A DNA stretch of 64,000 nucleotides. It comes from Intoshia linei (Eukaryota; Animalia; Orthonectida). Positions 25,360 to 64,000 of the stretch are shown here, one piece after another. The notes under the pieces were generated by a model. The model searched no databases and was not told the origin of the DNA. It was given only the letters and a program-made list of their open reading frames with translations. The stretch covers positions 15,069-79,068 of the forward strand of contig LWCA01000023.1 of assembly GCA_001642005.1 (NCBI GenBank). Direction: 5' to 3'. Every line of letters starts with the position of its first letter. Within the stretch, counting starts at the first letter, position 1. A program made the translations under genes and the position numbers.

Positions 25360-25433
25360 AGACCCTGGAGGGAATCGAACCCCCGATCTCCTGATCCGAA
25401 GTCAGGCGCCTTAATCCGCTAGGCCACAGGGCC
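25360..25433 (-). tRNA. tRNA-Arg(TCG)
   Basis: ggccctgtggcctagcggattaaggcgcctgacTTCGgatcaggagatcgggggttcgattccctccagggtc: cloverleaf, anticodon loop cttcgga, GTTCGA T-loop, followed by a T8 terminator. Confidence 0.95.
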
Positions 25434-63129: not shown

Positions 63130-63397
63130 ATGGTATGATTTTTAAATATTTTCTTATTTCTAATTTATTTTATAGTAATTATAACATTTATTTGTGCAAT
63201 TTAGTCTCACCGAAAGTTTTCTAAACCGCGACACGGATCCCTAGCCTTTTTACCTAGAAAGAGAACGAAACGACATCAAGGAAAAATTAGATCTTTTCCC
63301 AAAGATGATCGAAAAAAACCTGTACATTTAACTGCCTTTTTCGGATACAAGGCCGGAATGACTCACATTGTTCGTGATGTCAATAGATTAAAGTCAA
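63130..63397 (+). CDS. RPL3: 60S ribosomal protein uL3, first two exons (continues beyond window)
   Basis: ATG-only exon, then [43 protein letters not shown]. Confidence 0.97.
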
Positions 63398-63554
63398 GTA
63401 ATTTCTTTCTTTATATTTCATATTTTCCATAAAGAAGCTGATATTTCAGATTATAAGGCTCGTCTTTGAGTGTAATCAAATTTTATTAATTTATATTTGT
63501 GTGTTAATTTCAGATTTTACTGTGTCTAAATTTTTAGCTTTTTAATCGTTTTAA

Positions 63555-64000
63555 TCCCATGACATCAAAGGTCCGTGTTTCTAAAAATGATGAACTTTTT
63601 GTCTGATTGTAAGGAAATTTAGTTTTCAATATTAAGTTCTTAGTTATGATAATATTTAAGGTCCGTGTTTCGTTTGATTGTAAGGAAATTTAGTTTTCGA
63701 TATTAATTTTTTAGATATGATATTTAAAATTTGTGTTTCGTTAAAAAATGGATTTTTTTAATCTGAATGTTTTCTTTTACATTTCTGTGTAATTTTAATA
63801 CCTATTTGCATCTGATGACACCAAAGGTCCGTGTTTCTGAAAATGATGAACCTTTCGTCTGATTGTAAGGAAATTTAGTTTTCAATATTAAGTTCTTAGT
63901 TATGATAATATTTAAGGTCCGTGTTTCTGAAAATGATGCACCTTTCGTCTGATTGTAAGGAAATTTAGTTTTCGATATTAATTTCTTAGATATGATATTT
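63555..64000 (+). ncRNA. SNORD18: Tandem array of U18/SNORD18-like C/D-box snoRNA copies (at least 5-6 units, ~90-bp period) in RPL3 intron 2
   Basis: Best copy 63813-63862: C TGATGA, guide GGTCCGTGTTT, D' CTGA, C' ATGATGA, D CTGA; the guide is complementary to conserved LSU rRNA AAACACGGACC. Confidence 0.85.

Follow-up and report, generated by a model that had tools for sequence, protein, structure and literature searches.

A Probable U18-Type Box C/D snoRNA Locus, Tandemly Duplicated and Largely Decayed, in an RPL3 Intron of Intoshia linei

The end of the window, meaning the whole 64,000-nt stretch of Intoshia linei DNA analyzed here, carries a tandem array of U18-like units that is probably the only U18 (SNORD18/snR18-type) box C/D snoRNA locus of this animal. 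It lies in sense orientation within intron 2 of the single-copy RPL3 gene. Judged from its sequence, the array reads as a genuine, fairly ordinary example of how snoRNA genes duplicate and decay, set in a tiny, AT-rich animal genome: among the copies in the window, A2 appears intact and B2 weakened, and A1, B1, and C1 appear dead. An earlier sequence-only reading described an amplified array of U18-like genes. Tandem U18-like units in one intron are indeed present, but "array of genes" overstates the case because only A2 is fully canonical in the window.

Host Gene

RPL3 exons were each matched individually to Pfam. Exons 2 and 3 match Ribosomal_L3 in consecutive profile ranges, which bears out the earlier placement of the array in an RPL3 intron, and all copies lie on the RPL3 strand. 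The window ends with contig C2396, and intron 2 continues on the reverse strand of contig C1546, where it resumes with 419 nt left to exon 3. The assembly contains one copy of RPL3, with its profile divided between C2396 (positions 2-66) and C1546 (positions 67-369), and the two contigs are therefore joined through intron 2. As assembled, this intron measures at least 1,022 nt, and the remaining RPL3 introns seen are tens of nucleotides long; the median intron of I. linei is 57 bp (PMC6543705). The array accounts both for an intron of more than 1 kb beside such short neighbors and for the breaking of RPL3 over two contigs.

The 3′ part of intron 2 also contains, at L005:7600-7680 (−), the stretch UCUAcgGUGAGUCgcacauggaacgauaauaaaaccaauCUGAuuaaUAGA with CUGA and a 4-bp UCUA/UAGA closing stem. 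Its C-box-like GUGAGUC is poor and it has no Rfam match, and it is probably nothing. Elsewhere in the window, a tRNA-Arg(UCG) gene occupies positions 25360-25433 (−), with an Rfam tRNA score of 65.6 bits and agreement from ARAGORN.

Repeat Structure of the Array

The exact 12-mer GGTCCGTGTTTC occurs at 63570, 63660, 63826, and 63916, with a degenerate GTGTTTC at 63733 and a fresh unit (TGATAT) at 63990-63993, shortly before the contig ends at 64000. These are the four positions, the degenerate copy near 63730, and the unit start near 63992 that the sequence-only reading had listed, and each was found in the sequence. Its 90-bp spacing is matched by Tandem Repeats Finder (TRF), which reports a 90-bp period with 95% match over 63824-63997. 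The same reading took a 256-bp offset as the sign of a duplicated three-unit block. Global alignment of 63551-63806 with 63807-64000 agrees, as does a repeat search that returned four 93-nt copies and a 123-nt pair 256 bp apart with 93% identity. The units come as three types in the order A-B-C, with copy-specific 5′ parts in the A-type (CACCAAAGG) and B-type (AUAUUUAAGG) units. Coordinates are collected in Table 1.

Table 1. RPL3 host gene features and U18-like units of the array. Positions refer to the window unless a contig is named; box sequences are given with their positions.
Feature	Position	Strand	Boxes and motifs	Evidence
RPL3 start codon, exon 1 end	63130-63132	+	ATG, then GTATGA	Frame continues into exon 2 as M/SHRKF
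RPL3 intron 1	63133-63204	+	72 nt, follows ATG	
RPL3 exon 2	63205-63397	+		Pfam PF00297 (Ribosomal_L3), E 2.4e-27, profile positions 2-65
RPL3 intron 2, 5′ part	63398-64000	+	603 nt; GTAATT donor at 63398	
A1, decayed U18 copy	63551-63612	+	C CCCATGA 63556-63562; guide 63570-63580; D′ CTAA 63581-63584; C′ TGATGA 63588-63593; D CTGA 63603-63606	SNORD18 21.7 bits; alignment to A2
B1, decayed	63641-63692	+	C TGATAA 63647-63652; guide 63660-63671; D-like TTGA 63674-63677	SNORD18 18.4 bits; block alignment
C1, strongly decayed unit	63715-63806	+	TGATAT (63718) replaces C box; guide reduced to AAAATTTGTGTTTCG; D′-like TTAA; CTGA 63763	Unit alignment
A2, sole fully canonical U18-like copy in window	63807-63867	+	C CTGATGA 63812-63818; guide GGTCCGTGTTT 63826-63836; D′ CTGA 63837-63840; C′ ATGATGA 63843-63849; D CTGA 63859-63862	SNORD18 28.1 bits, full-length 1-71
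B2, near-intact	63894-63956	+	C TGATAA 63903-63908 (G6 to A); guide 63916-63926; D′ CTGA 63927-63930; C′ TGATGC 63934-63939; D CTGA 63949-63952	SNORD18 28.9 bits; motif positions
C2, first 11 nt of third-type unit	63990-64000	+	ATATGATATTT, the start of C1 and C3	Contig end cuts unit off
B3	L005:7930-7994 (C1546)	−	C, D′, C′, D canonical; GGUCCGUGUUUCGU-CUGA, 3 extra bases (CGU) before D′	
C3	on C1546		Resembles C1	
A4	on C1546		D box lost (UUUA); C′ AUCAUGA	
RPL3 exon 3	starts L005 7581 (C1546)	−		Pfam Ribosomal_L3, E 7e-39

Across the 41.6-Mb assembly, GGTCCGTGTTTC is found eight times, against once for a reversed-pattern control. Half of these sites are in the window, two are at the C1546 end, one is the LSU rRNA target itself on rDNA contig C1, and one is on C430. 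The C430 site has no snoRNA boxes nearby and was rejected as a chance site. A possible additional decayed unit upstream, at 63430-63550, was likewise rejected: its score of 43 to a C-type unit was reached by 28 of 500 shuffles, and a native control piece scored up to 47.

State of the Individual Copies

A2 combines a canonical box C, a canonical box D, and a terminal stem. The stem has 4 bp (TGCA 63807-63810 with TGTA 63864-63867), the ends are paired in the predicted fold, and 9 nt separate C′ from D. This combination is absent from A1, B1, and C1 and is present in part in B2 (UGAUAA). In A1, C′ and D are intact and the C box is destroyed (CCCAUGA vs. CUGAUGA in A2). B1 is without D′ and C′, which a deletion of 19 nt has removed. 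The deletion lies exactly between a pair of TTTC direct repeats, GTG[TTTC...CACC]TTTCGT (63673-63677 vs. 63927-63949), and has the form of a textbook slippage or microhomology event that would have fused the guide to the D-box region. Copy C1 has lost its guide (AAAAUUUGUGUUUCG), and its C, D′, and C′ boxes are degenerate. The G-to-A change seen in the B2 C box breaks the G-C pair of kink-turn stem II, a stem needed for snoRNP assembly, so B2 is probably impaired.

Three lesions named in the sequence-only reading hold, namely D′ CTAA in its copy 1 (A1), the internal deletion in its copy 2 (B1), and the TGATAA C box in its copy 5 (B2). The list was incomplete: it omitted the lost C box of A1, the TTGA D box and TGATAA C box of B1, and the lack of a guide in the third unit of each block.

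Beyond the window, A4 is the copy nearest the 3′ splice site, about 160 nt upstream of it, and the box-intact copies lie far from that site. By sequence, the one intron holds two box-intact copies (A2 and B3) and one weakened copy (B2), although B2 and B3 may be two allelic versions of a single unit.

Comparison among the paralogues gives no selection signal. Conservation is no lower in the spacers than in the snoRNA bodies, and the guide persists in dead copies; what makes the copies alike is therefore recent duplication or gene conversion. The usual route to snoRNA paralogues is local tandem (cis) duplication, with decay afterwards (PMC2653536).

Assignment to the U18 Family

The Rfam SNORD18 covariance model, named in advance as a check on this locus, gives a divided answer. 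By rank it favors the assignment: at E-value thresholds, each guide-bearing copy has SNORD18 (RF00093) as its top Rfam family, with no SNORD18 match at the guideless copy C1, and a whole-genome RF00093 search over 41.6 Mb places the best four matches, with E-values of 0.03-0.07, all in RPL3 intron 2. By score it does not, as the window copies reach 28.9, 28.1, 21.7, and 18.4 bits and the C1546 copies 29.4 and 25.7 bits, and none attains the SNORD18 gathering score of 41 bits, which is the formal Rfam criterion for membership. An Rfam run over the whole window at gathering thresholds returns nothing but one tRNA, so the SNORD18 matches count as sub-threshold support only.

The guide and D′ box of A2 and B2 (GGTCCGTGTTT-CTGA) reproduce the SNORD18 consensus UGGUCCGUGUUUCUGA letter for letter, in keeping with the earlier identification of a U18 antisense element joined to a D′ box. 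Elsewhere in the assembly, there is no GGTCCGTGTTTCTGA (guide plus D′) site with 0 or 1 mismatch. In the predicted fold, an internal AAAGGU/ACCUUU helix brackets the D′-C′ segment, much like the UCCAC/GUGGA complementarity of the SNORD18 consensus. Minimum-free-energy folding of A1, A2, B2, and B3 is no better than that of shuffled sequences, with z values between −1.25 and +0.44, a result that is usual for C/D snoRNAs and lends the assignment no weight. The locus is filed here as the putative U18-type guide of I. linei by predicted function and layout, and its missing Rfam membership is attributed to a shorter, divergent 3′ half.

Several other candidates were set aside. SNORD43 resides in vertebrate RPL3 introns, and its model scores 21.4 bits at 63582-63646, but this match runs from a C′ box in one unit into the C box of its neighbor and does not contain the GACGGGCGG guide. 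As possible U18 loci, C3345 has a weak covariance-model match without a C box, C970 has an exact match to the SNORD126-type extension but no boxes, and the guide sites with two mismatches look like chance or an unrelated repeat. The 15-mer GGTCAGTGTTTCTCA occurs on many contigs at about 9 sites (e.g., C1376:25004, C2123:437, and C2132:336) and GGTTCGTGTTTCAGA on about 5 contigs; both are probably parts of dispersed repeat families unrelated to U18.

Predicted rRNA Target

The guide has a perfect partner in the organism's own rRNA. I. linei LSU rRNA contains CCCGUCUUGAAACACGGACCAAGG, and C1:1809-1834 of the rDNA contig reads CCCGUCUUGAAACACGGACCAAGGAG. Against C1:1822-1833, the guide forms 11 Watson-Crick pairs together with the C of D′. 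Counting five bases upstream from D′ leads to a U, whose rRNA partner is the A of AAAC-A-CGG (C1:1827), the U18 site. Both the rRNA complement and the application of the D′+5 rule to the U18 adenosine, as put forward in the sequence-only reading, are thus borne out. Human 28S Am1326 is guided by SNORD18 (PMC11550049, Table 1), and because guide and ruler are identical to those of SNORD18, the A at C1:1827 corresponds to human 28S Am1326 and to the yeast snR18 site.

Upstream of box D, the copies carry a short element of 9 nt (ACCUUUCGU and variants) that could serve as a second guide. It has no convincing complement in the assembled SSU, 5.8S, and LSU parts, in which the LSU 3′ third is missing; lacking an rRNA match, this element leaves a U18-like, single-guide snoRNA. 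A fibrillarin gene is present in the assembly.

A partial, divergent LSU-rRNA-like segment also occurs off the rDNA contig, at C368:17002-18013 (within L026, C368:15502-19513), with 545 bits and model positions 665-1888 covered in about 1 kb. The adjoining version of the U18 target, AAACACGGACA, contains one mismatch. An rDNA pseudogene is one possible source of this segment; DNA of foreign origin, from a host or a contaminant, is another.

B3 may have a different target. Under the D′+5 rule, its predicted target shifts 3 nt in the 5′ direction from the U18 site, to the A at C1:1824, which is the position of human Am1323. In human 28S rRNA, this site is guided by a separate snoRNA, SNORD126 (PMC11550049). 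SNORD126 (RF01168) has the same antisense core GUCCGUGUUUC with its ruler shifted by 3 nt, and the 3 extra bases of B3 would give the same shift; the B3 CGU pairs with the rRNA in part, as C:G and G·U followed by a U-U mismatch. The score against the SNORD126 covariance model is weak at 19.8 vs. 55 bits, and a separate SNORD126-like gene was not found in the assembly. It is conceivable, if doubtful, that the array represents live guide neofunctionalization with polycistronic intronic processing, in which A2 would act at the U18 site, B3 would act at the SNORD126 site, and an endonuclease would release both from one RPL3 intron. If true, two guides for neighboring sites can arise from one gene through a small indel.

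Proposed Origin and Mode of Action

The proposed history begins with an ancestral unit of about 90 bp, comprising a snoRNA of about 61 nt and a spacer of about 30 nt. Duplication of this unit would have produced the three diverging types A, B, and C, and the 256-bp A-B-C block would then have been duplicated afresh and recently, with most copies now decaying.

In the proposed mode of action, the RPL3 pre-mRNA would be transcribed and intron 2 spliced out. Snu13, Nop56, Nop58, and fibrillarin would assemble only on copies with a C/D kink-turn, which in the window are A2 and, perhaps weakly, B2, and exonucleases would clear the rest of the intron, dead copies included. The mature RNA of about 61 nt would pair through GGUCCGUGUUU(C) with the LSU rRNA sequence GAAACACGGACC, and the A facing the base five positions upstream of D′ (C1:1827) would be methylated by fibrillarin. 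If this single intron holds two or more assembly-competent copies (A2 together with B3), they would have to be separated by an endonuclease, or a snoRNA-capped longer RNA would result. The sequence-only reading had proposed endonucleolytic processing or a single functional copy; products of the sno-lncRNA type would be a third option.

Alternative Explanations

The number of units depends on what the contig ends represent. C2396 and C1546 both terminate within the array, and no further contig in the assembly was found to carry array units. Aligned with the beginning of C1546 in reverse complement, the last 110 nt of the window show 96% identity, differing by 4 substitutions and one 3-nt indel; exact terminal overlap between the two contigs was rejected, with none exceeding 10 nt. 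Were the ends successive paralogous blocks, at least 165 nt and one A unit would be missing and the array would comprise 10 units or more; a total of about 7 would follow if the ends represented two haplotypes of the same unit. The estimate therefore runs from 7 to at least 10 units. The terminations within the array, the near-identity of the ends, and the absence of units from all further contigs are what would be expected if copy number and block structure were partly an assembly artefact, either because the contig ends are haplotypes of a single run of about 7 units (A1 B1 C1 A2 B2/B3 C A4) or because a much longer array has been collapsed. However, the two blocks within the window diverge from each other to just this degree, and successive paralogous blocks fit equally well. 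Moreover, five and a fraction units, both 256-bp blocks included, sit on one contig, so the tandem repetition itself is not an artefact. A partly artefactual copy number is plausible on these data, though on balance it is not the expected outcome.

The state of the copies raises the possibility that the whole array is a dead snoRNA-derived minisatellite, in which U18 function was lost in a reduced parasite genome and neutral relics were amplified by unequal crossing-over in an unusually long intron. Disabling lesions in most units, the missing between-copy selection signal, and covariance-model scores that all fall under the gathering score would agree with such a loss. Nevertheless, A2 and B3 retain all four boxes and the terminal stem, and both match perfectly, over 12 nt, a site methylated in organisms ranging from yeast to human; the locus is the only U18-like one in the genome; fibrillarin is retained; and an intron of more than 1 kb amid introns of tens of nucleotides suggests that the insert is tolerated for a reason. 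Wholesale death of the array is improbable in light of these features, and a live but decaying U18 locus is preferred. For such a live locus, the main product might be a snoRNA-capped longer RNA of the sno-lncRNA type instead of free U18 alone, bounded by the first and last competent copies, with exonucleases stopping at the snoRNP caps. The presence of at least two box-intact copies in one intron is compatible with this, and exactly such an outcome is described for two snoRNAs per intron in mammals (PMC11028025), but it is considered unlikely to be the principal product here.

Comparison with Known Systems

The I. linei locus shares with U18/SNORD18 (RF00093; yeast snR18; human SNORD18A-C) the C-guide-D′-C′-D layout, the antisense element and D′ box GGUCCGUGUUUCUGA, the predicted LSU target A (human Am1326), a single guide, and residence in an intron of a translation-machinery gene. 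It differs in its length, about 61 nt against a 71-position model, in its 3′ half, in its sub-gathering score, and in its host, RPL3, where vertebrates use RPL4 and yeast EFB1. In chicken and human, U18 sits within RPL4 introns, one copy in each (PMC2653536), which backs the earlier statement that vertebrate U18 lies in RPL4 introns, and yeast U18 is intronic in EFB1 (PMC9351541). Since the host already differs between yeast and vertebrates, RPL3 as yet another host is unsurprising. Chicken U18 copies occupy RPL4 introns 2, 5, and 6 (PMC2653536), one in each, whereas the I. linei copies are tandem within one intron.

The general pattern of one C/D snoRNA per intron in animals, also invoked in the sequence-only reading, is supported by PMC11028025 as a tendency and not a law. 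Intronic snoRNA clusters are a recognized category across eukaryotic model organisms (PMC11028025), and work by Huang et al. (2004/2005), as cited in PMC2246290 and PMC5932544, describes them in Drosophila. Such clusters resemble the I. linei array in carrying head-to-tail snoRNA genes within one intron of a protein-coding host and in the origin of paralogues by cis duplication. In I. linei, by contrast, all units derive from one snoRNA, most are decayed, and the other introns of the host are tens of nucleotides long.

Mammalian SNORD115/116 and SNORD113/114 are likewise built by amplifying a single C/D snoRNA in tandem, and their copies are gained, lost, and homogenized. These families repeat whole intron-exon units with one snoRNA per intron, have orphan guides and imprinted lncRNA hosts, and reach tens to hundreds of copies, whereas the I. 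linei array consists of a canonical rRNA guide in fewer than about a dozen units within a single ribosomal protein gene intron.

Significance

The putative locus places a highly conserved rRNA methylation guide in I. linei, where it would have survived in a drastically reduced animal genome, and RPL3 joins RPL4 and EFB1 as a U18 host. The array provides a compact record of snoRNA birth and death, with one copy intact, one weakened, and others killed by box mutation, a TTTC slippage deletion, or guide loss. If several copies are expressed, it would offer a tractable case for the release of clustered intronic snoRNAs in animals.
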